DNA from: Zygnema circumcarinatum SAG 698-1b
Taxonomy: Eukaryota > Plantae > Zygnematophyceae
DNA length: 64,000 nucleotides
Assembly: GCA_037447605.1 (NCBI GenBank)
Contig: CM074809.1
Coordinates: forward strand, 3,028,689 to 3,092,688
Reading direction: 5' to 3'
In this document: positions 25,291 through 52,117 of the stretch, piece by piece
Position numbering within the stretch: the stretch's first letter is position 1
How the letters are laid out: each line of letters begins with the position of its first letter
Position numbers and translations under genes: made by a program
Notes under the pieces: model-generated
Database searches by the model: none
What the model was told of the DNA's origin: nothing
What the model saw: the letters and a program-made list of their open reading frames with translations, nothing else

Positions 25291-25871
25291 CACGGGGGGG
25301 TCGCGGGGGGAGCACCGGGGGGGGGGGGGGGAGGGGGCATGCCCACGGGGGTTTGGGGGTTCACGCGATCGGCCGTGCCCGAGGCACGACTATAGCTCCG
25401 TATTATACACTTTGAGGTAACGCAAACTTTCATTGAGGTTCGATACAATGTTACAATGATGATGATGTTACAATGATACAATGTTCGATATAATACAGTA
25501 TTAATACTGTATTATACACTGTAGAATACCTTAACGCAACTGTTAACAGCCGTACAATCGGAACATAGATACGTACGGAAATTATGTACGGAGGGGGTGT
25601 ACCAACATGTACGGAGCAAGTCACACGTGTTGAATGTTTGGCAAGTGACGTGACTTGGCAGGTGCTGGAATTTCAATATTATAATCAATCTTTGTTCAAC
25701 TAAGCACGAAATAAAAAAAATACGTTAAATACATTAAAAATACACTGTATTTTTAAATGTTGTATAATACGCATGTATTATACAGTGTATTAATACACGC
25801 GTTTGATACATACGGAGCTTTAGGCACGACAAACCTTGCTCTGTAACTGGTCCGATCTAAACTGTATACAA

Positions 25872-26067
25872 TAGGGGGAGTCAGACCTTGACCATCGCTT
25901 ACGAAATTCCCGAATTCCTTTTACTAAAAGTCAAAGTTTCGTGTACGAATTCCGGGTCGGAATCCGCGGCTCCGCCGTATACAGTGAAATGTGTACCTAG
26001 CCAATCTTAATTCGCCCGACAGGCTTACGAAATTGATTTGGCGATGGTCAAGGTCTGACTCCCCCTA
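25872..26067. mobile_element. 196-bp MITE-like element with 27-bp perfect TIRs
   Basis: TAGGGGGAGTCAGACCTTGACCATCGC (25872) and GCGATGGTCAAGGTCTGACTCCCCCTA (ending 26067). The TAGGG start is hAT-like. No TSD seen (gtatacaa vs atgtggtc). Confidence 0.65.
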
Positions 26068-26169
26068 ATGTGGTCACGTCACGGGGCACGAAAGGGGCAT
26101 ACCCCCCCGGGCATGTCCCCCGTGGGCCGGGGAACGAATTGGGCCGGGACCGTGGCCCCAACCCTAACT

Positions 26170-26450
26170 GGCTGGCTGTGCAATGGTTTGCGACCATTGG
26201 CAATGGTTGGTTAAGTCTCACGCCAATGGTTGGCACATTGCCAATGGTTGGCACATTGCCAATGGTTGGCACATTGCCAATGGTTGGCACCTTGCCAATG
26301 GTTAGCTGTCTGATGCCAATAGTTGGAACCATTGCCAATGGCTGGCAAACAATTATTGGCTAAGTCTGACGCCAATAGTTGGAACCATCTCCAATGGTTG
26401 GCGATCAATGGTTGGTTGATTCTGACGTCAGATAGTTGCCAATGGTTGCC
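26170..26450. repeat. CCAATGGTTGG-family array (18-bp ccaatggttggcacattg tandem plus longer units)
   Basis: Direct read. Same family as 29820-30070, 45385-46080 and 48628-49000. Confidence 0.8.
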
Positions 26451-27373
26451 GGCGTTCTCTTCAGTCGGCAAGGAAAGGCCTTCGCTGTGACGACACTCAG
26501 GGTGAAAGAGATTCGGACACCTGTTAGCTTCTAGCTTTGCGTCTATGTCAAAGATCATGTTTTCAAAAAACTGTTTTATGGAGAAGTTCTCGTATAGCTG
26601 TAGGTTTGCAGAATGTCCTACCAAAACTCGCACCCCCGGTATTTTCTTTGAAAATTTTAGGCTTGCACCTACGTTTGACTCCGCTCTGCAAACCTGCAGT
26701 GCTTTCAGCGGACTGCATTGATTCGATAGCAGCAATACGAATCCAGATGCCTGTGGGCCCGCCGGATTTCCATTCCTCTTTCCTGCTCTGCCTCGAGAGG
26801 GGCGCCATCGAAGATCTCCGTCGCTTTCCGCCGGATGCGACTTATTTTTGCCCTATGTGACGCGCACATCAGCACTGGAATACGAAAGCTTTGAAGCGGG
26901 CAAGGCGCGCCTCATTGAAAGAGGGGAGCGCTTCAGCGATATTTCCTCAAAGGTTTGTCTACTAGACCTCAGCAACCCCCTTTTTTTGGATATGTAGTTC
27001 TGTTATCATCTATATTTGCGTGTATCTTCAAGAACATAGGCTGAACCTGATCGCCCTTAACGAGAAATGTCAATGATTTGGTGTTGACCAGACGCGAGAG
27101 ACCATAGCATTGTTGGGGCAGGATTTCGTGCGTGATGGCAGCACCAACTTGGTCCATGGCTTCTCGTGTCACACCTTTTTTTTCTAGACACAAACCTTTT
27201 TTCGCCGGGCAGATTTTAAAATAGACAATAAAGGATTAAAAACTGAAAATGCTTTCACATCTTTCAGGAATCGATACACACCTTTTTCGACGGGCAGATT
27301 TTATCCCTGATTTTTTTTTTGAGAGACAAAATATATGTTAGGGCCTGTCCGAATCCGCTCGGACGTACGTACG

Positions 27374-31628: not shown

Positions 31629-32329
31629 GGCCCCGCCGCCATGGCTCAATCCCCCCCGCCAATATCCTCCCTCCCCTCCCCCTCCCGCCGTCAGCCGTCA
31701 GCCGTCAGCCGCCCGCCCGCGGGAACGTTCCGGCGGGCCGATCCGGTCAAGCGGCCATCTGTCGATCCGCCATCGGACGGCTCCCAGGGCCCCGCCGGCG
31801 GGTGGGCGCGATCTAGCCGTCGGGTTGTTCGAGCGCCCTCCTGGATCCGCGCCACCGGCGCCCTCTCCCATTGGAAGTTCGCTGACGTGGCCGCGCCGCG
31901 ATCGGCCTCTGCGCTTCCAAGTGCGGCCGCGCGCCGGCCCGACTTAAAAGGAGGCACGGCGACTTCGGGCGGAAAGGACGGCCGTGCGAATCTACGAGTC
32001 AACGAAAGATTCGGTGCATATAGCAGTTAAGATTCGAATCAGATTTTCGAGTCCGACTTTATTGTCGTATACGATACCGACATGAAGGAGTAGCGTGCGA
32101 CATCGCAGAGGTGTCGAACATCGGAGGGGACTGCGGGCGGAAACAATGAAAACGACACCGTCCACGTGGCATCTCGACATTAGCTGAACGGCGCGGATCT
32201 CTGCGTGGCAGCGCCGGAGCCTGGCCCGATCGCACGGAACAAGCCCGCGGTCCGAATTGCGCCGCGCGCTGTCAATCGGGGGGCAATCCGGAGGCAATCA
32301 GCGCGCGGCGTCAGTCAGCGCCGTGGGAG
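31629..32329. repeat. Dispersed GC-rich repeat, copy B, truncated by the hAT end at 32330
   Basis: Homologous to 24510-25200. Confidence 0.85.
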
Positions 32330-33392
32330 TAGGGATGGATTAATTACGACTATATAATATATATTATATTATACAACTGTGACGACTAGATAACGGCTGT
32401 TATATATTACTTTACAACGCCTTTACAACATGTACGGTCGTACGGTCGTACCACTGTACGGTATTATGCGGCCCGAGCACGATGTAGCGTAACGGAGCTG
32501 CGTTCGGCGGATCCGCGTCCGTTCAGTTGTACTTGACGTATGCCTCTTCCGTGTCACGGATCAACGGAATCCAGGAGCTGCCAGCGGAGATTGAGAGAAG
32601 GCGGCGCCATGCGTTGGCGGCCCACGGAACAGCACACCATCCAGCAAGGCGCACTCGGGNNNNNNNNNNACTGCTAAGACTCAAGATCTATTGTCAGTGT
32701 TAAGTAGATGGGATGTCAGTGATGCTTGTTTGTCTTTTAGTGCTGGGCTTAGTATTTGGATTTGCTGTGTGGTTTGTTGTCTTGTTCTTCTTTCTTCTTT
32801 TCCTTCCTCTTCAGTTACAGCAACAGATGCTAAGTAAGAGAGAGAGAGAGAGAGAGAGTTCCATGCCATAGAGAGAGAGAGAGAGAGAGAAAGAGTTTCT
32901 TGCTGATAGCATTTAGACGTCCCATTCAGCCCAGTTAGACAAAGATTTCAGTGAGANNNNNNNNNNACGTCTTCAGAATCCCTACGTCTTCCGCTGCGCG
33001 TACCTCTGAATCCCCCGGATCCTGGCTCTATGCTGCAGGCAGACCCACAGCACCACCCCAACCCTACGTCAGTTTCAGCACGGACACGCGAGTGGCCGTA
33101 CAGCCCCTGCAGCTAGCTCAGCAGTCTTTGTTTAACCCCACTTATCTTGTGCTACAACGAGCAGACAGAGAAAACCAGACGGACGCATTTCGCAACGCCA
33201 ACGCCAAAACGACCTAATTTTGGTGTGGTACGACCGTACGACCGTACGACTACGGCCGTACGGTCGTTAATTGTTCAAAACGAATGGGTATAATATATAT
33301 AATAAAGTCTTTTACTTTATAATATATTACTACTTTTAAACCCGTTGTAAAGTATATAATATATTCGGAATTTATAACGCGGGCCATTCCTA
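32330..33392. mobile_element. hAT-superfamily element ends (Ac/Ds-like TIR), interior interrupted by two N-gaps
   Basis: TAGGGATGG at 32330 and CCATTCCTA ending 33392 (one mismatch), with subterminal CGTACG/ACGACCGT repeats. Both ends are homologous to the ends of 47119-48576. Gaps at 32660-32669 and 32957-32966. Confidence 0.75.
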
Positions 33393-34033
33393 GTCAGGAC
33401 CCCCTGCGAAATCGCTCGCGACGCCTTCGTGTCGGGAACGTATGCCGTGAAACTTCTACGACAAGAAAATCTGAAAATTTGAGCCGCACCGTGTAGCGTA
33501 AAACCGAAGAGGCTGAGACATTTGGAAACGAGGGTACTGTACTTAATTTCTCAATTCGCAATCTTGTTGCACACGCGAGGTCGAAACTTTTTCGATTTGA
33601 AAAAGCGAAAAGTAAAAAAAAAACGTTCAAAGACTCAACACGTTCGGCTGCAAGTGTGGATTCCACTTTTTGCCACGTTGTTGGTTTCGTGCGATTGAAG
33701 GGATCCGGTTAGCCCGAGCCCCAGTTTTGCCGTACGAATCTCTCGCGAGCCGATCAACAATTTCTGTACGGACAACCGGGTCCATGCGCTTGGCAATGGC
33801 AAAATCTCATTGTTGCTCAGTGGACCCAAGGAAAACTCAAACTGAACACGAACGATGATTATTTGTTCAATGTTTAATTGGTTTTCCATAAAAATAATTT
33901 TGAGAAAAAAAATTTAGGAATTCATTTCTCATTTCTCAAAATGAATCGTATTCACAAATACAGGGTTTCTCATAAAGAAACTGGTTTTCAATTTTTTTAT
34001 TTTGAGAAGCCAAAATCTTTAACTTCTTTTCGT

Positions 34034-34989
34034 GGGTAGTGATATTTCCACCCCTTTTTTGGATCCAAACACCCCTTCCCGGCCGGGCAGATTTCAAAAG
34101 GGATTAAAAACGGAAAATGCTGTTTTCACACCTTTTTGGAATCGATACCCACCTTCTTCCGTCGGCTGATTTTATTTTTGCTAACCAGCGAAAATGATAC
34201 CCCGTCCCCGCATTTTGAATACTGTATGATCTGTATCCCGCCTCCCTGAATTTTTTTTTTGAGGGAAAGATATATCTGCCTGCCCGAATCCGCTCGGAGC
34301 GGAAGATCCGTCTGCCACGAGATCGTTCGCGAGTGTCCGTCCTTCACACGTGCGTGTCAATCGCATCTGTCGATTTCCCTCGCAGATCGCACCACTGCAG
34401 ATCAAACGTTTGATCTGCAGCCGGGCTCGATCTTAGCGAATGGAAAGCGCCCACGAGTCCCGCCAAAGCCGGATCACACGTGCGAGTGCGCGCGTCCCTC
34501 GGCCCGAGATCTCGTGCATTGTCAGATCTCAGCCAATCAACATCTGCCACGTGTTAAATTTTTGACGTGGAAAACTTTGATTGGTCCAAGCTTTTAATGT
34601 ACGAAATATTGGGTTCCTCAAAGTTGCGACCGTACGACATTTGTACGAACAAACTTTTGAGAAGAGTTTGGCGGGATACGTGGGCACGTGCCATTCGCTG
34701 TGACCGAGCCCGGCTGCAGAGCAAATAGTGATCTGCCGTGTTAAGATCTGCGAGGGAATCGACGGCTGCGATTAACCGCACGCGTGAAAAAAATTCAGGT
34801 AGGCCGGATATTCAAAATGGGGTGACGGGTTATTTCCTTGTTTCGCAAAAATAAAATCTGCCGATGGAGGGTGGGTATCGATTCCAAAAAGGTGTGAAAA
34901 AAGCATTTTCCGTTTTTAATCCTTTTTGAAATCTGCCCGGCCGGGAAGGGGTGTTTGGATCCAAAAAAGGGGTGGAAATATCACTACCC
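34034..34989. mobile_element. 956-bp non-autonomous long-TIR element (Merlin- or Mutator-like MITE)
   Basis: TIRs of about 135 bp (imperfectly longer) begin GGGTAGTGATATTTCCACCCC and end GGGGTGGAAATATCACTACCC. The flanks CTTTTCGT (34026-34033) and CTTTTCAT (34990-34997) are an 8-bp TSD with one CpG-type transition. A related TIR remnant lies at 27170-27365. Confidence 0.8.
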
Positions 34990-35318
34990 CTTTTCATAAC
35001 CTGTTCGGTTTTACCAAACGACAAAACATTCAGATTCCAAATCTGATTCAAATCAGAAATCCGCATCCACCGACTCTTCGCGGCCGCCCAGACAGCTGAC
35101 GCCAGCGCGGCCTTGCAAGAGTTTGGAGCCTGAAAGGTAAAGGAAGCCGGACGGACAAGACGGTCTTACAAGACGGTTCTGCTTCCCGCAGAGCCGTCTT
35201 GTCTTGCAGGATCTGCAGGAAACTGCAGGGCAGGGCAGGAGGGAGAGAGGGAGGGACGGAGGGAGAGACGAAGGGAGGGAGAGACGAAGGGAGGCAGAGG
35301 AAAGGGGGGAGAGTAGCC

Positions 35319-38300
35319 ATGCCGGAGCCCACGGGAGATTTGGTGGCAGATGCGGCCCACAAGATTGAGGCCGATGCGTCGGCCCGAAGTATGGGGCTGC
35401 AGTCGCTCAGCTCGCTCACAGCAAAGCCCCCGTATCCGGGTACGCGGAAGGCCGGGAGGGAGGAGAGTGGGAGAGATATAGGAGGGGGGAGATAGAGAGG
35501 AGATGGTTCGGAGGAGGTTTATTTGCTACTCAGGGAAATGTAGGGTCCTCTTACGAGATGTCTGTAATAGGCCGTGAACAGGTCATAACCGGTTGCGTTT
35601 GGCGTTTGAAATAGAAAGAAGGCAGGTAGTTTAAAGAGGAAGGAGTGCAAGGAAGGAAACAGTCGCTTGTATTCCATCGAGAAAAAAAAAAACAATCGGT
35701 TTTGTTTTGTGGATGATTCAGAGGAAGGCCAAGCGGACGAGCAGATGCTCAAATGGGCGGCATTGGAGCGCCTCCCAACTTTTGACCGGCTAAAGACCGC
35801 GATCATGAGCAAGGTGTTGCAGGGGATGTCTTGGATGCATGCTGCTCGTATTGTTTAAGCCGACTAGACCACATATGAAACTTATTTCTAAGTCTCAGCT
35901 GTTCTTGGATCAGGAAAATAGCGCCCATGTTCGAAGTAAGTGTCCACAGCGTCCTCTGACTGACGATGTTGCTTACCTCCACTTGACCTGGTCATTCTAG
36001 CGTCTTATTGAGATGTAGGTTTTATGTTCCAACCGTTGAATGCATCCACGCCTTGAGCTACTGCTGTTTTTTGACTCACAGAATTTAATGTCACATTGTT
36101 TGCTGATGACCTCTCTCCCCCTCTCCCTTTCCCCCACCCCCCCCCTTTCTCTCTCTCTCCCCTCTTTCTCTCTCTCCCTCGGGGTTTTGGTCGTGCAGGT
36201 GCTGGACGACGGCAGCATTGTGCCTGAGGAGGTGGACGTGAGCAAACTGTCGACCGCGGAGCGGCAGAAGCTGGTGGAGCTGGCGCTGGAGACGCGCGAC
36301 CAGGACAACGAGGCGCTCCTCCGCAAGCTCAAGGCGCGCCTCGACAGGTGCGCCCTCCCTCCCTCCTCCCTCCCTCCTCCTCCTCCCTCCTCCTCCCTCC
36401 CTCCTCCTCCCTCCCTCCCTCCCTCCTCCTCCCTCCCTCCCTCCTCCTCCTCCCTCCCTCCTCCCTCCCTCCCTCCTCCCTCCCTCCCTCCCTCCTCCCT
36501 CCTCCTCCCTCCTCCTCCCTCCTCCCTCCCTCCCTCCCTCCTCCTCCTCCCTCCTCCCTCCTCCCTCCTCCCTCCCTCCCTCCCTCCCTCCCTCCCTCCT
36601 CCCTCCTCCTCCCTCCCTCCCTCCCTCCTCCTCCCTCCCTCCCTCCCTCCTCCTCCTCCCTCCCTCCCTCCTCCTCCCTCCTCCTCCCTCCCTCCCTCCC
36701 TCCCTCCTCCCTCCCTCCTCCTCCCTCCCTCCCTCCCTCCCTCCTCCCTCCCTCCATCCCTCCCTCCTCCCTCCCTCCCTCCTCCCTCCTCCCTCCCTCC
36801 CTCCCTCCCGTCCCTCCCGTCCCTCCCGTCCCTCCCGTCCCTCCCGTCCCTCCCTCCCCTGCATCCCCTCCGTCCCTCTGCCCCCTCCCCCGTCCTTTCG
36901 TCCTGCCTGCCTGCCGCGGCCTGGCCTGTGACACCGCGTCGCGTCACCTCTTGGGGCATGCAACAGGGTGGGCATCGAGTTTCCTTCCGTGGAAGTGCGC
37001 TTTGAAGACGTGTCCATAGAGGCGGGCGTGTATGTGGGAGACCGCGCGCTGCCGACGCTCATCAACTTCACTCGCAACACCATTGAGGTATGGAGGGAGG
37101 AGCTGTCGACCCTGCTGCGGCTGCTACAGACTTTGAAATGATGCAGTCCTGGTTACATGCGAAGCTTGTAAGGAAATGAAGTTAATAGGAAGAAAGCAAC
37201 ACTTGAACAAATCCCCTTAGTTATCAGTGGAGCAGAATGTCATTGCCACCCTCAAGCCTCCCTCCTCTGTCTGCTGTGCTGTGCAGGCCTTCTTGGTGAG
37301 TTCGAGGCTGCTTCCGGACAAGAAGCGGAAATTTCCAATTCTGCACAATGTCAGCGGCGTGCTAAAGCCCGGCCGGTACTTATCGACCCTGCTATGCCTG
37401 ATCCTCCGTTTCTTGGTTGCGAGAAGCAGCGGTTGATTCCGTACTGTATCAGATGCCAATTCCCTTTGGCCTTTCCAATATGCGGTGCAGGATGACCCTC
37501 CTTTTAGGGCCGCCCGGTGCTGGAAAGTCCACGCTGATGATGGCTTTGGCTGCGAAACTCGATTCGGATCTCAAGGTGAGGCTCAGCGTGACACTTCCGC
37601 AAACCATAAGTAACGTGTTGAGAGTGCGGTGGCGGTAAAGGGGCTTGAAACCTGCTCTGAGAATGAGCCGGATGTTACATTGCCGGATTGCAGTTTGAGG
37701 GCAACATCTCCTACAATGGACACGAGATGAACGAGTTTCTGCCTGTACGGACAGCGGCGTATGTGAGCCAGAACGATGTTCACATTGGAGAAATGACCGT
37801 GCGGGAGACGTTGGATTTCTCAGCGCGAGTGCAGGGAACGGGTTTCAAGGCTGGTACGGTTCGGAAATGAGCTTTTGCTGCCAGTTTCAAGTCAATAATA
37901 AAAATTTCTCACTTAAAATCACTTAGAATACGCTGCAAACGCCGCAATTCAGTAGCGGCACGAAGTCGTCGATATTCCGCCACAATGGTCATTTGACGGT
38001 TTTTGCGATGCATGTCCTTTAGTAAAGCTCGATGCTGTGCGTCCTAGCATAGAAGGAGGGCGGCTGAGGTGAAATTGCGCGCTTGCGTTGCTGCAGGCCT
38101 TGCACATGAGCTGGAAAAACGTGAGAAGAAAGAGGGAATCAAGCCGGACCCCACCATGGATGCATTTCTCAAGGTGAAAGCTTCTCCTTCCTGAAGGTCT
38201 GCCTCGGCGTGAGCCCTCCGGGGCAGTCCAAACCACAGCACCTTCAGTGCGGCGCACTCCTCTCAGAGCTGAAATTTCATCAGGATGTGGAGGGGAAGAG

Positions 38301-41300
38301 ACTTGCATCTGACGCGGCTGCGTAATCCAATGCAGCCAAAAGTATGATTCAAAGAAAATCGACAGAGTATGACGCGTTACTCTTTCCTCTTGCGTACAGG
38401 CTCTCTCTGTGAACGGACTTCCGGAGAACGTTGTCACTGATTACGTTCTTAAGGTGAGCGTGGGAGAGGCACTCCGACGTGCCATAGGGCTCCGCATTCG
38501 ATCTCCTTGCTCCTTTTTTCTCTCTCATCGATCGGTTTTCTTCTGTATTTAAAGTTTGTCTTTTATGGTTTTGGTATGTTGGTTTTGGTCGAGGGCAGAT
38601 TCTCGGCCTGGAGGTTTGCGCTGAGACATTGGTCGGAAACGAGATGGTTCGCGGAATTTCAGGCGGACAGAAGAAACGCGTCACCACAGGTGAGAGCCCG
38701 GGGCCCATTTGGATTTCCTTTGGGTTGACCTGCTGCTTTTTTTACTTTTATTCACAGGGATGGTAAGAACACTTGGGATACAAGTCGCTTCAAATCATTC
38801 TCAACATTCGGCTCTGCCTCGGAGCATGCAGGTGAAATGATTGTCGGCCCCAAGCAGGTGCTTTTCGCTGATGAAATATCGACAGGCCTCGACTCGTCCA
38901 CAACCTTCCAGATCACTCAGTGCTTGCGCAATTTCACTCATTTCCAGGTAACGTGCCCAGTTCTTGTTCCCTGCTGAGAAACCAACTTCATTTTTCTAAG
39001 CGAAGGCCCTCATTACCGAGCCCCCCCGCACCCCCCTCCTTCCCCCTTCTTCTGCAGAATGCGACCACTCTGATCGCACTCCTCCAGCCCGCTCCGGAGA
39101 CGTACGACCTCTTTGACGACATTCTGCTTCTGGCGGAGGGTCACATTCTGTTCCACGGCCCGCGGGAGGAGATTGTGCCCTTCTTCGAGGCGCAGGGCTT
39201 CATCTGCCCGGAGCGAAAGGGAGTGGCGGACTTTTTGCAGGAGGTGAGATGCGCAGCCGCGCTTGTGTTCAGCCGTCTATGAGAGCGGGAAATTTACTGG
39301 GGCTGTTGCTAAATGGAGTATATTTGGAGAAACCGCTTTTGAAGCAATGAGGCTGAGGCATGTTCGTTCATACATAGTGTGGCTGCACACTGTGAACAGG
39401 TGACATCTCGGAAGGACCAGCAGCAGTACTGGGGCAAGGAGGAGCAGTACGAGTATGTCCCTGTCCAGGCTTTCGCAGATACCTTTGAAGCATCTGTTCG
39501 TGGAAAGGAAATTAAGCAGACTCTCTCGGTACGCTTGTCACACATACATCCTTATGCCTAAACTCTCTATAGCAGCTACTGTTTCAGTTACGCTTTTTTC
39601 GAAGAGTTGGAAAGCATTTGATGGATGAGTCGGGCTTGCTTTCCTGCAGACTCCCTATCCGAAGGAGAAGAGCCATCCTGCAGCTCTTGTGAAGGAAACG
39701 TTCGGCCTCTCTCAGGTGCAGCTGTTCAAGGCTCTCTTTGAGCGCGAGGCGCTGTTAATGAAGCGCAACGCCTACTTCTACATTGCGCAGACAATCCAGA
39801 CGATCATCTTGGCCTTTGTCACTATGACCGTTTTCTTTAGGACGGAGAACACCGCTGCGGACATCCCTACAGGGAACAGGCATCTCGGGGCCCTCTTCTT
39901 TGGCCTCATTGTGATGCTCTTCAATGGCTTCGCAGAGCTTTCCCTCCTTGTCATGCGCCTGCCCGTCTTCTACAAGCAAAGAGAGAACTCCTTCTTCCCA
40001 GCATGGGCGTACTCTCTCCCAATGTGGATTCTCTCCATTCCATTCTCTGCCTGGACGTCTTTCGTGTGGGTGGTTATGACGTACTATGTGATCGGGTACA
40101 CGCCTGAGGCTGGGCGGTTCTTTCGCCACCTTCTGGTGATGTTTCTCCTTCATCAGATGGCGATTGGGGGGTTCCGCTTGATTGGAGCCTTGAGTCGAAG
40201 TATGGTGGTTTCCAACACCTTTGGCACATTCATTTTGATCGTCATCTTCTGCCTCGGAGGCTTCATTATTGCAAAAGGTAGGCCGATCTGCATGAAAAAT
40301 TGCATGCATTGAAACTGGAAAATATCAGTACAGGGAGTGATTAATTTGTGGGTCTTCTGAGGTTTGGTGCTATAAGATAGAGATATTTGTGAAGGGGGCC
40401 AGAGGTGTGTTTAAGAATTGCCTTTTGGCAGTCTCCTGAATGGAAGGCTTCTAGCATCTGTTTGTTGATCCGAATTTCACTTTGTAAGCAGGTGACATCA
40501 AGGTCTACTGGATATGGGGCTTCTGGACCTCCCCACTAGCATATGCACAGAACGCGATCTGCAACAACGAGTTCAAGGGCAGCAGGTGGCAGGGGGTGAG
40601 CTCTACGTTTGCTTACTGGCATGTGGGTGGACATACAGGACAGGAGCCCACTGAATCCTTAATCTTTCTGTATGGACAAGTGTACGCGGAAGCTATATTT
40701 TATGTAGAGTTGCTCCCATGAGTACATGTCCAGCAGCTCACAGTCTTAGAGATGGCTTTGGTTGCAGACGCTGGTTGCTGAGAGTATCCGAAACTATGAA
40801 GGGCAGACTGTGGGAGATTTCATACTGCAGTCGCGAGACCTGTTTGATGAGCCAGGGTGGTACTGGATTGGGGTGGCCGCCACGTTTGGATATCTCGTCC
40901 TTTGGAATCTCATCCTTCCTCTCGCCCTCAAGTATTTAAATCGTGAGTGCCTCGAGCTTGCTTTCACTTGATTTGCTCTTTTTCGATACGCTCGTTGAAC
41001 CCAACAGTTCCCTGTTGACAGGCAGTTTAACCGGATAAGCTGGCATCTCCCTCCAATCCTGGCAATTAAATTTGCCTCGTTAGATTCCATCCTTTTGAAA
41101 CCTCCAGCTTACATCCCCTCTCAATGTCTATGTTGGACGTTCAGCTCTTGGCAAGCCTCAGCCAGTGGTGTCCGAAGATTACATCGTGGCAAAGCATGCG
41201 GCACTAACCGGAGAGATGGAGGACGACTCTAAGAGTTCCATGCGGTCCAAACGGAAAATGCAACGAGCAACAACGCTCAAAACGTTTCGCTCCGGTGAGT

Positions 41301-44300
41301 CGGATTTATTCTTTAGCGAAGCTTAGTCGATGCAGGTTTGCTGGAACTAGTTTTCGTGCCTCTTTTCTGAAAGCGAGTTTTGGTCTGGAAGGAACGTAAT
41401 ACCAACATACGGGAAGTTTATTGTCGTCTTTTTCTGCAGCTTCCAGCAGCTCTCGCCGGGTGTCCGACTTGGGCGCGCACTCTGGACGAGGACTGTATGG
41501 TCAGAGGTCAATTCAACGAGCTCCGATTAATGAAGCCGAAGTAGCGGAAAGCGGAGGAGACATGCACAAGGGTATGATGGTCCTTCCATTCGAGCCTCTC
41601 TCTCTCTCCTTCCACAATGTCAATTACTACGTCGACATGCCGGCAGAGATGAAAGCGGAGGGAGCCCCTGAGGACCGGCTTCAGCTTCTTCGGAACGTTT
41701 CCGGAGCCTTCCGGCCGAGTGTGCTCACAGCGCTGGTCGGTGTGTCGGGAGCGGGCAAAACGACTCTTATGGATGTGCTGGCGGGCCGGAAGACGGGGGG
41801 GTACATTGAAGGCGACATTCGCGTCTCGGGGTACCCAAAAGTGCAGGACACCTTCGCCCGAATCTCTGGCTACTGCGAACAAAACGACATTCACACGCCC
41901 CAAGTCACTGTTCATGAATCGCTGCTCTATTCTTCGTGGCTTCGCCTTCCGGCGACGGTGGACAAAGAGACGAGAGAGGTGAGCCTACGAGATTCTACGA
42001 ATTTGTGCATGGACTGGAGGCAGAATGGAGCCCGTAAGCGAACCTTAGTCCGCTTTGCGGAAGTGAAGCGAGTAATTATTTGTAATCAACGTGAATCTCA
42101 AACTCCTTAAATGGTCACTTGGCTGGATACCTAGAGCCTTCTTGTTGGAAGATTGGTGTGTTCATTTTTCACAAGTTCTCCATTTTGTAAGGGATCTCCA
42201 CACTTGCTTTAGTGCCAAATAGGTCACATCAAAGGCTTGCGCCTTGAAGCTGGTTTATGGGGTTGCGTCATTTTCAGGCCTTTGTCGAAGAGGTGATGGA
42301 CCTTGTGGAGCTGGATACCCTTCGCGATGCTCTTGTGGGACTTCCCGGCGTCACCGGGCTGTCAACCGAGCAGAGGAAGCGGCTCACTATAGCTGTTGAG
42401 CTTGTCGCCAACCCTTCCATCATCTTCATGGATGAGCCGACTTCTGGTACGAACCTGCTTCAAATGCTACTCATCATTCATTGCTTGCTTTCTCTCCCAC
42501 GTTTCATTACATTTCATGAATGTCTGTGCCCATCCTGTTGTGCTCCTATTGTAGGCCTCGATGCTCGCGCGGCTGCCATTGTGATGCGAACCGTACGGAA
42601 CACTGTGGACACGGGCCGTACGGTGGTGTGCACCATCCACCAGCCCTCCATTGACATCTTTGAAGCCTTCGACGAGCTGCTCCTCATGAAGCGAGGAGGG
42701 CAGGTCATCTACATGGGACCTCTCGGAACCAACTCGCAAATCATGGTTGACTACTTTGAGGCGATCGAAGGGGTGCCCAAGATCAAGGAAGGCTACAATC
42801 CTGCCACGTGGATGCTTGAGATTTCGCATCCTGCCGCAGCCGAGAAACTCGGAGTTGACTTTGCAGAGCTCTTCACCAAATCAGAACGCTTCAGGTGAGA
42901 TTGCTATTTGAATCATGAACCGGAATGCAGTGTCAAAAATTCTGGGGGTGTTTTCCCTTGCATGGAAAGTAGGCCTGTGACTAATGGAACTGGTTACGGG
43001 GTGATTTCATGGGGCAGGCTGAATGAGGAGCTGATAGAGTCTTTGAAGGTGCCTCCTGAAGGACATGAGGACCTCCATTTCGAGTCCAAGTTCTCGACCT
43101 CTGCAACTACGCAGTTCATTGCCTGCTTGTGGAAGCGCAACCGCATGTATCTTCGTGCGCCTGACTACAATGTCGTGCGATTCTTTTTCTGCCTCACTAT
43201 CGCCCTTCTTATTGGCTCCCTGTTTTTCGGTCTTGGAACAAAGACGTCGAACCAGCAGAATGTATTCAACGTGATGGGTGCCCTCTACACGTCTGCACTC
43301 TTCCTCGGCTGGTCCAACGCTTCATCTGTGCAGCCCATTCTCGCTGTTGAACGGACTATTTTTTACCGTGAGCGAGCCGCCGGAATTTATTCGGCTCTCC
43401 CTTACGCTATGGCTCAGGGCATCATTGAAATCCCCTATGTATTCGTACAGTGCATCCTTTACTCGCTGGTCACGTACGCACTGATTCAGTTCGAATGGAC
43501 GGCGCCCAAGTTTTTTTGGTACACGTTCTTCATGTTCCTCACTCTGCTCTTCTTCACCTATTACGGTATGATGGCGATTTCGATCACGCCTAATGAGCAG
43601 CTGGCTATGGTGGTCTCGGCATTCTTCCACTCGCTTTGGAATCTTTTCTCCGGCTTCATCATCACGCGCAAGGTGAGTGGACGAGCTTTCCCTTGTCGAC
43701 GAACTTTTCCAATCTCGTGTCAGCTTAGGATTAATCCGTGATGGATTTCCTTTTCCATCGGTTACACTGGGGTTGCCCTACCCAATTCCTCGCGTCTTTC
43801 TTCCCTTCCCTGGTTTGATTCAGAAAGCAGAAGCCGTACCGGTGATGTAATCGATGTCTATATGCAGGCGGCTGGTTGTAACACTGGAACATTGCTCGTC
43901 CTGGTTTCTTTTTGGTGCGCAGGCCATCCCTCCATGGTGGAGATGGTATTATTTCATCAACCCTGTAGCGTGGACCCTCTATGGTCTGATCGCTTCGCAG
44001 GTGAGCACTGATGACGTGGCATGCATCGGCTTGGGACGACCCATGCCTCTCTCTCTGCATGTTGAACCTATATGTTGATAGCTCTTATATTTGTCTATTG
44101 CTAAAGGAATCAACTGTGCGTTGTGATGGGTTTGACCTTATGGTGCAGCTTGGTGACTACACGAATTTGATCAATCAGCCGGGGTCGACCCGACAGCAAA
44201 CAGTGAAGGCTTTTCTGAAAGATTACTTCAGCTACGAGGATAGCTTCTTGGGTGAAGTCGTCGCTATCCTCATCGCCTTCACCATCGTGTTCTTCTTCAT

Positions 44301-44343
44301 ATTTGCATACGCTATTCAAAAGCTGAACTTCCAGCAGCGTTAG
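35319..44343 (+). CDS. Full-size ABCG (PDR-type) transporter, copy 1, about 22 exons
   Basis: [14 protein letters not shown]; [15 protein letters not shown] (Walker A1); [15 protein letters not shown]; [18 protein letters not shown]; [15 protein letters not shown]; [21 protein letters not shown] (Walker A2); [42 protein letters not shown]; C-terminal LNFQQR*. The exon junctions I checked were in frame. Confidence 0.95.
36349..36880. repeat. About 530-bp (CCT/CCCT)n polypyrimidine tract filling ABCG intron 3
   Basis: It starts immediately after the CAG|GTGCGC donor and is the source of the poly-P/S/L and poly-E/G/R ORFs in the track. Confidence 0.95.
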
Positions 44344-45384
44344 CATAGGGTGTGTTAGTTGCAGCAAGCAAACACTAATGAATAAGGGATTGTGAGGCAC
44401 GTCCCAAGGGTAGTTATGTGTACCCAATTTATTTAGTTTCAAAATTCATATTAATGTTTCATAAATGTGTACATGAGGGGGGTAGAACTGAACTGAGACG
44501 TAGCAGATGTAGGAGCTGGCGGGAGAGGGGGGGGTGGGATGATGGGTGCCAGTCGATTACTGCCGAAGATGATTTTTGGTGGGAGCAATCTCTGGCCTCG
44601 ACGGCTATATACAAATCGTATGCGCTTTTTTTTTTACTTGCAATGGATTTCATCTGGTCTGGGCTTTTTTGCATCTCCCTACGTTTGCAGTCCTCCAAAC
44701 CATGCATGTTTTCATTTGCAGAGAGCTTGGCGTAGACTTCATTGCCTGGTTTCAGCTCGAATGGTTGTTTGTGGTGGTGTGAGACCAACTCTTCCGCTCC
44801 CGGCTCCTCTAGGCGAATCACTTTCCTTAGGAACTCTGGTCCCCACTGAGGAAGACATCTGCTCTCTTCAAATCAAAGGAACTCACTCATAGGCAATTTT
44901 ACCCACAAATCAAATGCCAGATTTAATTCTGCGGGTCAACACTAGAGAGAAGCGTGTAGGATAAAGCTCACAGCCCTAAAAATCCTTTAATAAATGAACA
45001 CCCACATGAAAGTTGCTTCCCAACACTAAGAGGTAAGCTCGGTCACTCACTATCTCACACCACGAGTGACGGTAGCCTCGAACACAAGCAAGCACAGAAT
45101 AAGAGGTAGGTTGTAATCACTACCAAACAACCCTCGCTAAGTATTCGAACATGGCTATGTGACGTGACTCCTTCCTGTTTACCGGACGTCCCACACAGCC
45201 GTCCCTTGCAGGCGCATGCAGTCAACAGCCAGCAGGCCGTTCAATGGCCAGCTACGCGGCCTCACGTAAACCTACGACGGCACCGACCTATATAAGGCTT
45301 GCCGTACGGCTCCGCCGCCCGACCGTACGCGCTGCCGCCCGCTCGTGCATGTCCGCCGCCCGTGCAAGTTTTGCAGAGTTCGGA

Positions 45385-46080
45385 CCAGTGGATCGGCAAC
45401 CATTGGACAACCATTGGATGGCAATGGTTGGACGTCTACTGGTTGGCAATCAGTCGACTGGTTGCCAACCAGTGGATGCCACTGGTTGGCAACCAGTCGA
45501 ATGGTTATATCCATTACATCAAATGGTTGGCAACCATTAAATCACTAGTTGTAGCGAACTGAACGCTACAGCTACCAAAATGCCGTCGGCGTTTCGGAGA
45601 AAACTATTACGGTTAAGCCGTACAGAATCCCCGTACTACCGTACGACTCGGCTGTACGAATCCGTACGCATCTGTACGCATCAGGCGTGTTACACTAGTT
45701 GTCAACGGTTGGCAACCAACCAAAAAACACAAACGACCCATTTTTGCAAAAAGGCATAATTTCAGAAATTCAATGGTTGCCAACCATTGGATCACTGGTT
45801 CCGAACCAGTCGAATGGTTGTTTCAGTCCTGCGCCACTGGTTCGCAACCAGTCGACTGGTTTCCAACCAGTGGATGCCACTGGTTGGCAACCAGTCGAAT
45901 GGTTGTTTCGATCCGGCGGCACTGGTTGGCAACCATTCGACTGGTTGCCAACCAGTGGCATCCACTGGTTCCAAACCAGTCGAATGGTTGCCAACCAGTG
46001 GCATCCACTGGTTCCAAACCAGTCGAATGGTTGTTTCGGTCCGCAACCACTGGTTGCCAACCAGTCGACTGGTTTGTCTA
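45385..46080. repeat. Array of short palindromes (CCAGTCGACTGG, CCAGTGG-nnn-CCACTGG, CCAACCATTGG) in about 40-85-bp recurring units
   Basis: AACCAGTCGACTGGTT perfect palindromes at 45846-45861 and 46059-46074; an approximately 43-bp near-tandem at about 45950-46035. Confidence 0.8.
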
Positions 46081-47202
46081 ATGGTCCGATCTGTGAAGTT
46101 TTGACTCGGTCCCCTTCTCAGATGGAGAGAAGGCGCGGCTCTTCTCAGCGCGCTAGGCCCACACTGTCAACGTTTGTACGGCCGCCATGCATGGTAGAAG
46201 TACTAGGAACACACCCCACATCACACAAACTTAGTACCACCATAGTGAGTGTTATACTAATTAATTGACTAACAAACATACAGTAACGGTTTGCTCTGTG
46301 GAGGGGGCTCATTTCTTCTGATAGGACATAATACTACTTCCAGTTTATTTTTCGATGGAGAATGTTGATGGGGATATATACTGGAACGGATTGGATATGG
46401 GGTGGAGATTCAATATGAGCTTTTTTTTCTCAATTGTTGTTCTCAACACATTGTTCTGCGTCCTAAGAAGTTTCTTGGATGACATTTGTAAATGTATGGT
46501 TCACATCAAGGTGTTAGTACTTAGTTCCTCGCATGAATGTTGTCCGGGACATGAATGTGTTGGAGGAAAAGGTACAATGTGGTATAGGGACAATGTCCAT
46601 GCATGGATGTTATGTTTGGTGTAGGACCGAACATGGGGTTGTCCGCATTCTTAGGGCACGGTACGGGCAGGTCTCGGGATTGTCTAGGGTCGTAGGTTTG
46701 CGGCCTAGTCTAAGACCTTACCAAAGGGGTTGCGCGGAATGCGCCTGGACAAATGGAGCGCGGCCGTTCGGACGGCGCGTGATTGTTACAACGCCGAAGT
46801 GTACGGACGAGGGGATTTGGCCGCGAGAGGCGAATTTGCGCGAACCGACATGATTGGTCATGACGCGCACAAATCGCGATGCAATCTCTGTACGTGACGT
46901 GACGGATGGTCCAGCAATGTCGGTGGAGAGAATTCGAGATGTCGGAGCGCGCGAGACACTCCAATGGTAGTGCGCGAAGCAGCGGCGCGAACTGTCAGTG
47001 GTGCCGCTTCAGAATGTCGACGACGGTTCAGGGTGCACCACGTGGAGCAGGATGTAGTGGGTGCAACGCGTCTGCGCGGACGGCAGGATGGCCGCCCCCG
47101 ACGGCCGCCACTCCCACGTAGGGATGGCCCGCGTTGTAAATTCCGAATATATTATGTACTTTACAACGGGTTTAAAAGTAGTAATATATTATAAAGTAAA
47201 AG

Positions 47203-47418
47203 TGCAAACTTTCATTGAACTCGCGATGGCGAGGCCATCAAATGTACATGGACAAAGGCAAAATGTGGAACCACGAAGGACTGGTCACAAAGGACCGAAA
47301 CACAATAAAACGAAGCTAGGAGCGGAAAACTACGCCTAGGCACAACAACGCAGCCCTAGAAGCAGCCGCGAAGGTCACCGATGTGAGGCACGTCGCGAGG
47401 GAGCGGCGGAAGTCCACC
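47203..47418 (-). mobile_element. 216-bp 5'-truncated non-LTR retrotransposon insertion
   Basis: Flanked by the 10-bp direct repeat AAAGTAAAAG (47193-47202, 47419-47428). The uninterrupted target is seen in reverse at about 33300-33325. The sequence is a subset of 48115-48508. Confidence 0.75.
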
Positions 47419-48340
47419 AAAGTAAAAGACTTTATTATATATATTACACCCACTCGTTTTGAACAATTAACGACCGTACGGTCGTACGGTCGTACCATAC
47501 CAAAATTAGGTCGTTTAGGCGTTGGCGTTGCGAAATGCGTCCGTCTGGTTTTCTGTCTGCTCGTGCTCGGGCCGCATAATACCGTACAGTGGTACGACCG
47601 TACGACCGTACATTTTGTAAAGGCGTTGTAAAGTAATATATAACAGCCGTTATCAAAAGGTGTGGAAACTTTCATTGAACTCGCGATGGCGAGGCCATCA
47701 AATGTACATGGACAAAGGCAAAATGTGGAACCACGAAGGACTGGTCACAAAGGACCAAAACACAATAACACGAAGCTAGGAGCGGAAAACTACGCCTAGG
47801 CACAACAACGCAGCCCTAGAAGCAGCCGCGAAGGTCACCGATGTGAGGCACGTCGCGAGGGAGCGGCGGAAGTCCACCAAAGTAAAAGACTTTATTATAT
47901 ATATTACACCCACTCGTTTTGAACAATTAACGACCGTACGGTCGTACGGTCGTACCATACCAAAATTAGGTCGTTTAGGCGTTGGCGTTGCGAAATGCGT
48001 CCGTCTGGTTTTCTGTCTGCTCGTGCTCGGGCCGCATAATACCGTACAGTGGTACGACCGTACGACCGTACATTTTGTAAAGGCGTTGTAAAGTAATATA
48101 TAACAGCCGTTATCAAAAGGTGTGGAAACTTTCATTGAACTCGCGATGGCGAGGCCATCAAATGTACATGGACAAAGGCAAAATGTGGAACCACGAAGGA
48201 CTGGTCACAAAGGACCAAAACACAATAACACGAAGCTAGGAGCGGAAAACTACGCCTAGGCACAACAACGCAGCCCTAGAAGCAGCCGCGAAGGTCACCG
48301 ATATGAGGCATGTCGCGAGGAGGGAGCGGCGGAAGTCCAC
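47206..48340. repeat. 460-bp tandem repeat, about 2.5 copies
   Basis: aaactttcattgaactc recurs at 47206, 47666 and 48126. Identical ORFs appear in the track 460 bp apart. Confidence 0.95.
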
Positions 48341-48508
48341 CAACACGATCACCAACAACTGCAGCACGCCGAAGAAGCGTAGAAGCGAGGCAACGCTGAA
48401 GGGCGACGGAAATACGCTGTCGATAAAAGGTAGCCAAGATCGCCGGAGGAGGGCTTCCGGGGCCGTGCATCTCGAAGGAGCGATGGGCGCACTGGCGAAG
48501 GAACTGGT
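48115..48508 (-). mobile_element. 394-bp 3' end of a non-LTR retrotransposon, probably restriction-like-endonuclease (CRE/NeSL-type)
   Basis: Flanked by the 9-bp direct repeat GCCGTTATC (48106-48114, 48509-48517). The frame is open from the 5' truncation point: QFLRQCAHRSFEMHGPGSPPPAILATFYRQRISVALQRCLASTLLRR...*. The RQRISVALQR motif resembles the C-terminus of RLE-type LINE ORFs. A 3' UTR follows. Confidence 0.65.
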
Positions 48509-48627
48509 GCCGTTATCTAGTCGTCACAGTTGTATAATATAATATATATTATATAGTCGTAATTAATCCATCCCTAGTTACCATACGGGCGGGCCGTCGG
48601 GGGCGGCACTCAGTGAAAGGTGGATGG

Positions 48628-48825
48628 CAATGGTTGGCTGAGTCTGACGCCAATGGTTGGAACCAGCGCCAATAGGTGGCAACCAATGGCTGGCCGAGTC
48701 TGACGTCACAATGGTTGGAATCAGTGTCAATAGTTGGCAACCAATGGCTGGTTGAGTCTGACGCCAATGGTTGGAACCAGTGCCAATAGGTGGCAACCAA
48801 TGGCTGGCTGAGTCTGACGCCAATT
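48628..48825. repeat. About 56-bp tandem repeat (3.5 copies) of the CCAATGGTTGG family
   Basis: gagtctgacg at 48640, 48696, 48754 and 48810. Confidence 0.85.
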
Positions 48826-49798
48826 GCCCTAGTGGTTCCCCTTGGTGCTTTTGTCCATCTACATTTGATGCCCCATAATGAGATAAATGCCATTTTCCCC
48901 CCTTGCAACGGTTGCGAACCATTGGATCGTGCGATTATTGCCATGCAGAGGTTGTCCAATGGTTCCCGATGCAATGGTTCGACCTGCGAAGGGTTGATGC
49001 AGTTATCCGACCGCTGCAGCACTGCCAATTTTCTTTTTCAACTTTTTGGGCCGTGACCACATTGAAGTTAACTTTCATTGAAAGGTTTCCAGATTGATAA
49101 GCCCCATTTGAGCAGAATGAAACCGTAGTTGTGCCATCTGATGACTGTCGAGCGAGTGACAAACTTGCAGGAAACCGAGAAATTACATTCATGTTAATTT
49201 GAATGAAACATCAAATATCATTGAAAGTATCTTCCAGGAAACGTCGTAGGATGCAGAACAATGCTTTGTGAATTACAAGTGAGAAAAAAAGTTGCCATCG
49301 AGACTATACATATATGTATAACAAGGTTGCTGGAAGTAGATTGATGCCCCATCAGAAGAAATGATGCCACCAACACAGAGCAAACAGACATTCGAGCTGA
49401 AAGCAGGCAATGAAGTCCACGCCAAGCTCGGTACAAATGATATGATGCATGGTTCGGAGGACTGCGAACATACAGAGATGCAGAGATGCCCAAACCAGAT
49501 GACATTCATTGCAAGTGAAAAAAAAGCGATTTGCATTTAGCCGTGGAGGACAGACATCCCTCCCATGCTCGCCACCAAATCATCTTCGGCAGTAATCGAC
49601 ACGCATTCATCCTCCCACCCCCCCTGCCCCCTTCCCCCCAGTTCCTATATCTACTACGCTCTCAGTTAAGTTCTATCTCCCCCATGTACACAGTTATGAA
49701 CAATAAATAAGTTGCATACACATAACCCCCCTTGGGAAGGGCCTCACAATCCCTTATTCATAAGTTTTGCTTGCTGACAACTAACACACCCTGCTGTG

Positions 49799-51258
49799 CT
49801 AACGCTGCTGGAAGTTCAGCTTCTGAATAGCGTATGCAAATATGAAGAAGAACACGATGGTGAAGGCGATGAGGATAGCGACGACTTCACCCAAGAAGCT
49901 ATCCTCGTAGCTGAAGTAATCTTTCAGAAAAGCCTTCACTGTTTGCTGTTTGGTCGACCCCGGCTGATTGATCAAATTCGTGTAGTCACCAAGCTGCACC
50001 ATAAGATCGACCCCATCACCACGCATTGTTGATTCCTTTAGCAATAGACAGATATAAGAGCTATCAACATACAGGTTCAACACGCAGAGAGAGGCATGGG
50101 TCGTTCCAAGCTGATGCATGCCACGTCATCAGTGCTCACCTGCGAAGCGATCAGACCATAGAGGGTCCACGCTACAGGGTTGATGAAATAATACCATCTC
50201 CACCATGGAGGGATGGCCTGCGCACCAAAAAGAAACCAGGAAGAGCAATGTTCCAGTGTTACAACCAGCCGCCTGCATATAGACATAGGCACAGCATATA
50301 GGCATATGGACAGAACTGGGGGGGGGGGGGGAACTGATGGAAAAGGAAATCCATCACGGATTAATCCTAAGCTGATACGAGATTGGAAAAGTTCGTCGAC
50401 AAGGGAAAGCTCGTCCACTCACCTTGCGCGTGATGATGAAGCCGGANNNNNNNNNNNNNNNNNNNNNNNNNNNNNNNNNNNNNNNNNNNNNNNNNNNNNN
50501 NNNNNNNNNNNNNNNNNNNNNNNNNNNNNNNNNNNNNNNNNNNNNNCGGGTGGAACAGAAAACCAATATCTCAAGAAGACGCTAGAATGACCAGGTCAAG
50601 AGGAGGTCAGCAACATCGTCAGTCAGAGGACGCTGTGGCCACTTACTTCGATTAAGGGCGCTATTTTCCTGATCCAAGAACAGCTGGACTTAGAAATAAG
50701 TTCCATGTGCGGTCTAGTAAGCTAAAACAAGAAGAGAAGCATGCATCCAAGACATCCCCTGCAGCACCTTGCTCATGATCGCGGTCTTTAGCCGGTCAAA
50801 AGTTGGGAGGCGCTCCAATGCCGCCCATTTAAGCATCTCCTCGTCCGTCTGGCCTTCCTCTGAATCATACACAAAACAAAACAGCATTTATTAGTTTTCT
50901 CGATGCAATACAAGCGACTGTTTCGTTCTTTATATGCCTTCCTCTATTGACTATCTGTCTTCTTTCTATTTCAAACGCCAAACGCAACCGGTTATGACCT
51001 GTTCACTGCCTATTACAGACATTCGTAACGTGGCCCTACATTTCCCTGAGTAGCAAATAAACCTCCTCCGAACCAATCTCCCCTCTCTCCCCCCTCCTAT
51101 ATCTCTCCCACTCTCCTCTTCCCGGCCTTCCACGTACCCGAGTGCGGCGGCTTTGCTGTGAGCGAGCTGAGCGACTGCAGCCCGATACTTCGGGCCGACG
51201 CATCGGCCTCAATCTTGTGGGCCGCATCTGCAACCAAATCTCCCGTGGGCTCCGGCAT
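49799..51258 (-). CDS. ABCG (PDR-type) transporter, copy 2; 5' and 3' ends present, middle missing in an assembly gap
   Basis: 51258-50547 is the reverse-complement homologue of 35319-about 36030 ([21 protein letters not shown]..., [19 protein letters not shown]). 50446-49799 is the homologue of about 43650-44343 ([32 protein letters not shown]). 100 N at 50447-50546. Intactness cannot be judged. Confidence 0.8.
50447..50546. other. Assembly gap of 100 N; the true size is probably about 7.6 kb if ABCG copy 2 is full length
   Basis: The flanks correspond to about 43650 and about 36030 of copy 1. Confidence 0.8.
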
Positions 51259-52117
51259 GGCTGCTCTCCCACCTCCGCTCCCTCCCTCTCTCTCTCCCTC
51301 CTGCCCTGCCCTGCCCTGCAGTGTCCTGCAGGACTTACAGGACGGCCTTGCGCGGCCCCGCCTTTTGAATCTCCAACTCTTGCACGGCCGGGCGGCCGGG
51401 CGGCCGGGCGGCCGGGCGGGCGTCAGGGCGGCCGAGCGCGCCCGCCGGGAGGCTTCCCAAACCTGCGCGCTTCCGCGCTTTCCCGCGTGGGGTGGACAGA
51501 GGATGATGTCAGCCCGGCGCGCCGGCCCCGGTTCTGCCGCCCCCGAGCATCATATCTGGCGTATTTTCGATAGTCATGATCCAGTCAGAGATCGCCACGT
51601 CAGAAAGGCGCTGATGTGGCAGGCTACGGTTGGTTAAATCTCTGTGGTATCCCATTGGGTCGCGATCCTCATTCGCGGCATGGGCGGGGCTGCACCCATG
51701 ACGTCAGCGTCCTTGCGGCGCCTGCCGCCCGAGCCTGCCACGTGGCGCTCTCTCTGTGGCTGGGACTTGACAGCCTCGGACCAAGCGAGAGCCGTCCGAT
51801 TGTGATGGCTGGTTTGGATCGACGGCTCGTAGCTGGCCGGAGGCAGCCCGACTGCGAGCTAGCCGTTTCCCCAGCCCTACAGGCCGTACAGTATCTGTGC
51901 AGTGCTGGTGCCCTTCGGCGGCGGCGGACGGCCCAGGCACATGTCGCTGTTGGGGAACCAGTTCCAGTTGTTTTCGCGCGTAAGAAACATGTGAATAGAA
52001 CGGCTGTTCCTCAAAGCAGGAACGGTGGTAGAGGCATGGATCCGCCGTTAGGGTACGGAAGGAGGACTTTCGGTTTTGTGAAGGGCGTGCTGTGCCTTGG
52101 GAAGGGCTGGGCCGGCC

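Follow-up and report, generated by a model that had tools for sequence, protein, structure and literature searches.

How did two copies of an ABCG transporter gene come to lie tail to tail in the genome of the streptophyte alga Zygnema circumcarinatum SAG 698-1b, and did a transposable element turn one of them around? We addressed this question in a 64-kb stretch of DNA (assembly GCA_037447605.1, contig CM074809.1, positions 3,028,689 to 3,092,688 of the forward strand), which we call the window; counts and occurrence figures refer to the window unless stated otherwise. We found that two inverted copies of a hAT miniature inverted-repeat transposable element (MITE) share one split 8-bp scar and that they bracket a 14.8-kb segment containing the first of the two genes, ABCG-1. 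We refer to the copies as el1 (32330-33392, plus strand, A-to-B orientation) and el2 (47119-48576, minus strand, B-to-A orientation), where A and B are the two end types of the MITE.

Two inverted MITE copies share one split target site duplication

A copy of the terminal inverted repeat (TIR) TAGGGATGG begins at 32330, directly after CGTGGGAG (32322-32329), and a second copy begins at 47119, directly after CTCCCACG (47111-47118), which is the exact reverse complement of CGTGGGAG. These two ends both point rightwards and are of opposite type: the plus-strand copy of the 8-mer adjoins the A end of el1 (TAGGGATGGATTAATT...), and the minus-strand copy, read as CTCCCACG on the plus strand, adjoins the B end of el2 (TAGGGATGGCCCGCG...). 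An earlier reading of this DNA from its letters alone (the sequence-only reading) had described hAT ends at these two places, both directed rightwards and preceded by reverse-complementary 8-mers, and its positions and sequences proved exact. It had also noted that neither element has a target site duplication (TSD) with its own partner end, and the outer flanks bear this out. The partner end of el1, at 33392, is of type B with one change (TAGGAATGG); read inwards it is TAGGAATGGCCCGCG..., and the flank that follows it is GTCAGGAC (from 33393). The partner end of el2, at 48576, is of type A and is followed by GTTACCAT (from 48577). GTCAGGAC and GTTACCAT show no complementarity to each other and no match to the CGTGGGAG/CTCCCACG pair, so that both el1 and el2 lack a TSD of their own, and the sole 8-bp duplication of this MITE family in the window is the one split between them.

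Within the window, exact copies of the 9-mer TAGGGATGG are confined to three of the four element ends, and the fourth end (33384-33392) differs from it by one mismatch. When we estimated empirically how often two 8-mers of the window are reverse complements of each other, the probability was 2.6e-5, or ~1.5e-4 over the six possible pairings of flanks.

The elements resemble Ac/Ds

BLAST comparison of el1 with el2 defined a core MITE of ~389 bp. In el1, the A part lies at 32330-32482 and the B part at 33157-33392. The two copies agree at 161/162 positions in their A parts and at 81/84 positions in the terminal portion of their B parts; the internal portion of the B parts is 87.7% identical, with one 2-bp and one 14-bp indel. 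The 9-bp TIR is present on all four ends, once in the TAGGAATGG form, and its first 8 bases are those of Ac (the TIR of Ac/Ds is C/TAGGGATGAAA; PMC3260210). The hexamer GTACGG/CCGTAC occurs 18 times per kb in the MITE as compared to 1.0 per kb in the window, an 18-fold enrichment of a subterminal repeat. Maize Ac has the subterminal hexamer AAACGG, whereas the algal MITE has GTACGG instead. Judged by these terminal and subterminal sequences, the family to which el1 and el2 belong is an Ac/Ds-like non-autonomous hAT element. In the portion of the window that was examined, we saw no hAT transposase cognate to the family.

The larger size of el2 reflects inserts that resemble long interspersed nuclear elements (LINEs) and a 460-bp internal tandem duplication. 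Its layout is B-terminus, insert I1, a block of B-internal plus A-internal sequence, insert I2, a second such block, the long insert I3 and A-terminus. An 8-bp repeat, CCGTTATC, flanks I3 and a 9-bp repeat, AAGTAAAAG, flanks I1. The insert copies have one end in common and the other end variable, which resembles 5' truncation on the minus strand. The left junction of I2 is that of I3 and its right junction is that of I1; this mix is what unequal crossing-over between I1 and I3 is expected to leave, and such an exchange would yield the 460-bp tandem duplication (98.8% identity).

The flanking repeats indicate an inversion

To either side of the two elements lie parts of a repeat unit that is present without interruption elsewhere in the window. 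This reference, copy A (24510-25288, plus strand; 24510-26438 with its Z arrays), consists of X (24510-25209), a 41-bp spacer, Y, which begins with the 16-mer GGCCGTYGGGGGCGGC (25243-25258), and Z (arrays at 26181-26438). Left of el1, the X part of a unit that we call U1 (X', 31629-32321, plus strand) ends 8 bp before the element and is now separated from its Y; in a self-BLAST, 24510-25145 and 31629-32268 are 85.7% identical. Right of el1, the old flank of its B end is a fragment of X in reverse (X'', 33393-33475, minus strand) that matches X at ~24917-24996 with an E value of 4.9e-8 and whose first 8 bp, GTCAGGAC, are partnerless. Left of el2, the 16-mer of U1 lies in reverse, as GGCCGTCGGGGGCGGC, at 47091-47106 (minus strand), 4 bp from the second TSD copy. 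Right of el2, the old flank of its A end (48577-48638, plus strand) starts with the partnerless GTTACCAT and runs on into the 16-mer at 48592-48607 and the remaining Y' of the second unit, U2.

The 16-mer has three exact or one-mismatch sites in the window (25243-25258, 47091-47106 on the minus strand and 48592-48607 on the plus strand), as compared to 0.07 expected, and el2 is flanked by an inverted pair of them at 12 bp and 15 bp from its ends. The two 16-mers of this pair are identical at 16/16 positions; identity in the arms around them is 64-84%, and the spacers of 12 bp and 15 bp next to the element are unrelated. A sensitive BLAST search further found inverted homology between the 3' flanks of the two ABCG genes, extending up to el2 (46289-46343 with 49385-49330, 46422-46494 with 49290-49219, and 45377-45449 with 48985-48912). 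The Z-type tandem arrays at 26181-26438, 45379-46074 and 48620-48824 are built of a near-palindromic CAATGGTTGG-like unit; we dropped them as orientation markers, since their mutual matches fall on both strands.

X' and a reversed X border el1, and a reversed and a forward Y border el2; a flip of 32330-47118 restores two tandem units. After this flip the order is X', 12 bp, Y 16-mer, Z and ABCG-1, followed by the X fragment, the MITEs, Y', Z' and ABCG-2. The sequence-only reading had stated that the rejoined flanks follow copy A; this holds in part, since the end of X and a 16/17-mer agree with copy A, whereas the spacer measures 12 bp here and 41 bp there. The evidence from the X and Y flanks is independent of the shared 8-mer, and with it a 14.8-kb inversion at the ABCG locus is well supported by the arrangement of the sequence. 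The body of the inverted segment would be 33393-47110, with the whole of ABCG-1 and its flanks. ABCG-1 and ABCG-2 now stand tail to tail, and the earlier proposal that an inversion brought a tandem pair into this arrangement gains support from the inverted X paralogs at el1, the inverted Y 16-mers at el2 and the inverted homology of the ABCG 3' regions.

The two halves of el1 belong together

The A and B parts of el1 are separated by a nested insertion, J (32483-33156; 674 bp), which starts with TGTAGC, ends with GCTACA and has the 4-bp duplication ACGA at its flanks. At the point where J entered, el2 is uninterrupted (GAGC-ACGA-GCAG). Both 10-N gaps of this region (32660-32669 and 32957-32966) are inside J, and we found no overlap between the two sides of either gap. 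The piece between the gaps (32670-32956; 287 bp) has a GC content of 0.41, as compared to 0.57-0.62 in the neighbouring sequence. Since a single TG...CA insertion with an ACGA duplication sits at one point of the MITE, the halves of el1 belong together, and by this signature the scaffold join is very probably correct in order and orientation. From 32967 to 50446 the sequence is free of gaps (17.5 kb) and contains the B half of el1, the reversed X fragment, ABCG-1, the reversed 16-mer, the complement of the TSD, el2, Y' and the start of ABCG-2.

J has TG...CA ends, a form like that of a long terminal repeat (LTR), and a 6-bp terminal inverted repeat, and it may be either a solo LTR or an LTR retrotransposon that has collapsed. 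The piece of 287 bp between the gaps bears (GA)n runs and may be a misplaced small contig.

Reversed-ends transposition as the proposed mechanism

Two routes to an inversion between transposon copies leave different flanks. Ectopic recombination between inverted copies exchanges both TSD pairs and causes no deletion, whereas one new TSD, along with a deletion or duplication, marks aberrant transposition in which the ends come from two copies located at separate sites (PMC2775673). In the maize allele p1-wwB54, which arose by reversed-ends transposition (RET), a 331-bp segment between the transposons was lost, an Ac lies inside the inversion and 8-bp TSDs are found at the breakpoints (PMC8225341). 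At the algal locus, the oppositely oriented copies bracket the segment, and the TSD is found where one copy has its A end and where the other has its B end, in reverse-complementary form. The remaining flanks, GTCAGGAC and GTTACCAT, do not match, and when we judged the old flanks against the paralogs X and X', we found that X plus spacer lacks between 202 bp (X' coordinates) and 231 bp (copy A coordinates). Recombination accounts less well for these data than alternative transposition does, since a single flank pair is exchanged and ~200-230 bp are missing at the other; by the criteria of PMC2775673 and PMC8225341, these same two features support the sequence-only reading, which had proposed alternative transposition. 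We favor, with moderate confidence, alternative transposition with reversed ends as the source of the inversion.

We infer the following ancestral state and sequence of events. The ancestor would have had two tandem units, each with X-Y-Z and then ABCG on the minus strand; where X meets Y in the second of them, two direct copies of one hAT MITE would have lain with ~200-230 bp between them. Both transposon ends would then have inserted jointly at CGTGGGAG, where X meets Y in the first unit, at a distance of 14 kb, and this insertion would have created the 8-bp duplication and flipped all that lay between, one MITE copy and ABCG-1 included. We derived the outcome by hand. Starting from X' T Y'' ... 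X-fragment [B<-A] ~200 bp [B<-A] Y', where T is the target, RET gives X' T [A->B] reversed-X ... ABCG-1 ... reversed-Y rcT [B<-A] Y', and the four flanks and both orientations of this product are those of the present state. The inverted segment under the reversed-ends model is 32330-47118, with el1 included, rather than the 33.4-47.1 kb that had been claimed. Insertion sites of hAT elements follow the pattern nTnnnnAn. Both old flanks match this pattern and the new TSD matches it at A7 alone, a weak point in favor of the model.

Several observations weigh against this scenario. The X'' fragment is short (~80 bp, 75-88% identity). The window has no intact copy of the MITE family on which the 8-bp TSD rule could be checked. 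Owing to the two 10-N gaps, el1 is not read through, and because neither gap has overlapping sides, its base-level continuity cannot be shown. We found no comparison allele, relative or second assembly: the protein collection lacks the proteins of this genome (the best hit, for the neighboring F-box/RCC1 protein, has 47% identity), and the 25-base A end of the MITE had no match in metagenome contigs. Lastly, 12 bp separate the new target from the 16-mer that follows it in the first unit, and 15 bp separate the old site of el2 from the 16-mer that follows it in the second, a near-paralogous coincidence that the model leaves unexplained and that has a probability of ~1e-3 if targets are uniform over 15 kb. 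This coincidence may come from an insertion hot spot near the 16-mer or, more speculatively, from an older transposon-mediated origin of the unit duplication itself.

Alternative histories

If the 8-bp complementarity were coincidental, el1 and el2 would be unrelated insertions whose TSDs have decayed. Eight base pairs are short, and nothing else speaks for this reading; the probability over all pairings is the ~1.5e-4 given above, and a further 21 bp of flank also agree with the X-Y order of copy A, so that we regard chance as practically negligible. An assembly artefact, in which the segment between inverted repeats was oriented arbitrarily or el1 is a chimera across its gaps, is very improbable in our judgment. 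Scaffolders tend to err at repeats, the 287-bp piece that lies between the two 10-N gaps of el1 differs in composition, and a 100-N gap begins at 50447. However, the breaks in the two halves of el1 fall at exactly one MITE position, where a 4-bp duplication borders a TG...CA insertion, there is no gap within 32967-50446, and unflipping the segment in silico would still leave one copy without a TSD and X deleted.

A more substantial competitor, although we consider it rather unlikely, is ectopic homologous recombination between two independent, oppositely oriented MITE copies, one at the X/Y boundary of each unit, with a separate adjacent deletion that removed the TSD of the unit-2 copy and ~200-230 bp. 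This history yields the identical topology and the exchanged CGTGGGAG pair, it is the best-documented mechanism for natural inversions flanked by transposable elements (Galileo; PMC2775673), and the copies share ~390 bp at ~97% identity. It predicts, however, that both flank pairs are exchanged without loss, whereas here one pair is exchanged, the second is mismatched and X is truncated at that other breakpoint. It also takes four events as compared to three, the shared homology is short for recombination, and the coincidence of near-paralogous sites is left over here as well. A check of el1 and el2 for chimerism had few differences to work with (the 161/162, the 81/84 and the 87.7% with two indels) and no reference copies. 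A more complex history seems to us distinctly doubtful; examples are a hybrid element that inserted between sister chromatids or between homologues and whose two ends integrated in an uncoupled way, or a serial transposon-mediated duplication followed by inversion. It would accommodate the position of both breakpoints at near-paralogous sites, 12 and 15 bp from the 16-mer, and tandem duplications with the junction at the element are a known product of alternative transposition (PMC3744419). Against it, the units are 64-91% identical as compared to ~97% for the MITE copies, which makes the duplication of the units appear much older than the MITE copies, and a BLAST comparison of 33.4-35.2 kb with the sequence right of 51.35 kb detected no homology. 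In one specific and quite improbable form of this history, the hAT family acted twice: an earlier alternative transposition would have duplicated the X-Y-Z-ABCG unit in tandem, with the junction where the element had inserted, and a later event would have inverted one unit. Such a two-step history would explain why both breakpoints lie within ~15 bp of the 16-mer.

We also considered and rejected a number of other arrangements. A composite "macrotransposon" spanning 32330-48576 in one repeat copy has X' on its left and Y'Z' on its right, collinear with copy A; its outer ends are both of type A and its outer flanks, CGTGGGAG and GTTACCAT, differ. Inversion by a single element, through sister chromatids or in a replicative manner, has a hand-derived product in which both flank pairs must be complementary, and they are not. 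A hairpin-derived excision palindrome as the source of the paired 16-mers is at odds with the unrelated 12-bp and 15-bp spacers and with inverted homology that reaches ~1-2 kb into both arms. An ancestral inverted duplication with el2 at its center fails to explain X' at the far end and the shared 8-mer. Finally, if the contig 32967-50446 had been flipped in scaffolding, turning it back would give neither copy a TSD.

The ABCG genes and neighboring features

ABCG-1 (35187-44771, plus strand) is a full-size PDR-type ABC transporter gene, recognized by exon-by-exon Pfam scans, with limits set by homology with ABCG-2. The domains, scanned on single exons rather than on a joined protein, are a first nucleotide-binding domain (NBD1) with its P-loop at ~37.4 kb, a first transmembrane domain (TMD1) at 39.7-40.3 kb, NBD2 at 41.4-42.9 kb, TMD2 at 42.9-44.1 kb and PDR_CDR at 44.0-44.3 kb. 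Between the 5' homology block of ABCG-1 and its first recognizable exon there is a long minisatellite array (36353-36912), to which the arrays at 2523-2661 and 3077-3262 are related. ABCG-2 (49381-51352, minus strand) is represented by a 3' part (50286-49381), 88% identical to ABCG-1 at 43854-44771, and a 5' part (51301-50547), 91% identical to 35274-36035. A 100-N gap at 50447-50546 sits between these two homology blocks and hides the middle of the gene; ~8 kb of ABCG-2 may be absent from the assembly, or this copy may be an internally deleted pseudogene.

Two further features lie close to the pair. At 52097-53995 one open frame of 632 aa encodes a protein with an F-box and RCC1 repeats (Pfam WD40_RLD 9e-57, F-box-like 2e-5), whose nearest match in the protein collection has 47% identity, with none above. 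Another kind of TIR element occupies 34034-34989; its inverted arms measure ~220 bp (start GGGTAGTGATATTTCC, 84-91% identical), its 8-bp TSD, CTTTTCGT / CTTTTCAT, matches at 7/8 positions, and a related arm is found at 27172-27363.

Comparison with known systems

The closest likeness is to RET by Ac and fAc at the maize p1/p2 locus (PMC8225341). There, too, two linked copies are involved, their facing ends are cut and the ends re-insert nearby; one element comes to lie inside the inversion, 8-bp TSDs mark the two breakpoints, and the TIR begins with TAGGGATG. The loss between the transposons is 331 bp in maize and ~200-230 bp in the alga. Unlike the maize Ac/fAc elements, those of the alga are non-autonomous MITEs of ~389 bp, the case is inferred from one genome sequence rather than followed from a known progenitor, and the event is old enough for later insertions to have nested within the elements. 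The Galileo inversions of Drosophila buzzatii (PMC2775673) are likewise natural inversions between inverted copies of a cut-and-paste element, diagnosed from exchanged TSDs; in contrast to the algal locus, they show exchange of both TSD pairs, lie between chimeric copies and lack a deletion. In rice, closely linked pairs of Ds, also hAT elements, are reported to yield inversions and deletions (PMC3239180, PMC3429523), in a system that is experimental and transgenic, unlike the locus studied here.

Events of this kind are already known, and the algal locus would add a natural case from a new lineage. Alternative transposition of Ac/Ds has been well studied in maize and in transgenic rice, and its footprints in the sequences of wild genomes have been documented less often than inversions based on recombination. 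The locus also illustrates how transposition may be told from recombination in a single assembly, by one exchanged TSD pair together with a lost segment between the elements, gauged on paralogous repeat units. If the serial history were true, the locus would be a natural record of transposon-driven gene duplication followed by reorientation in a streptophyte alga. If the reversed-ends inversion is true, an Ac/Ds-like family in a streptophyte alga rearranged a duplicated PDR-type ABC transporter locus in the way known from maize; ABCG-1 would have gained a new upstream neighborhood, and the change from a tandem to a convergent pair would alter recombination between the two gene copies.

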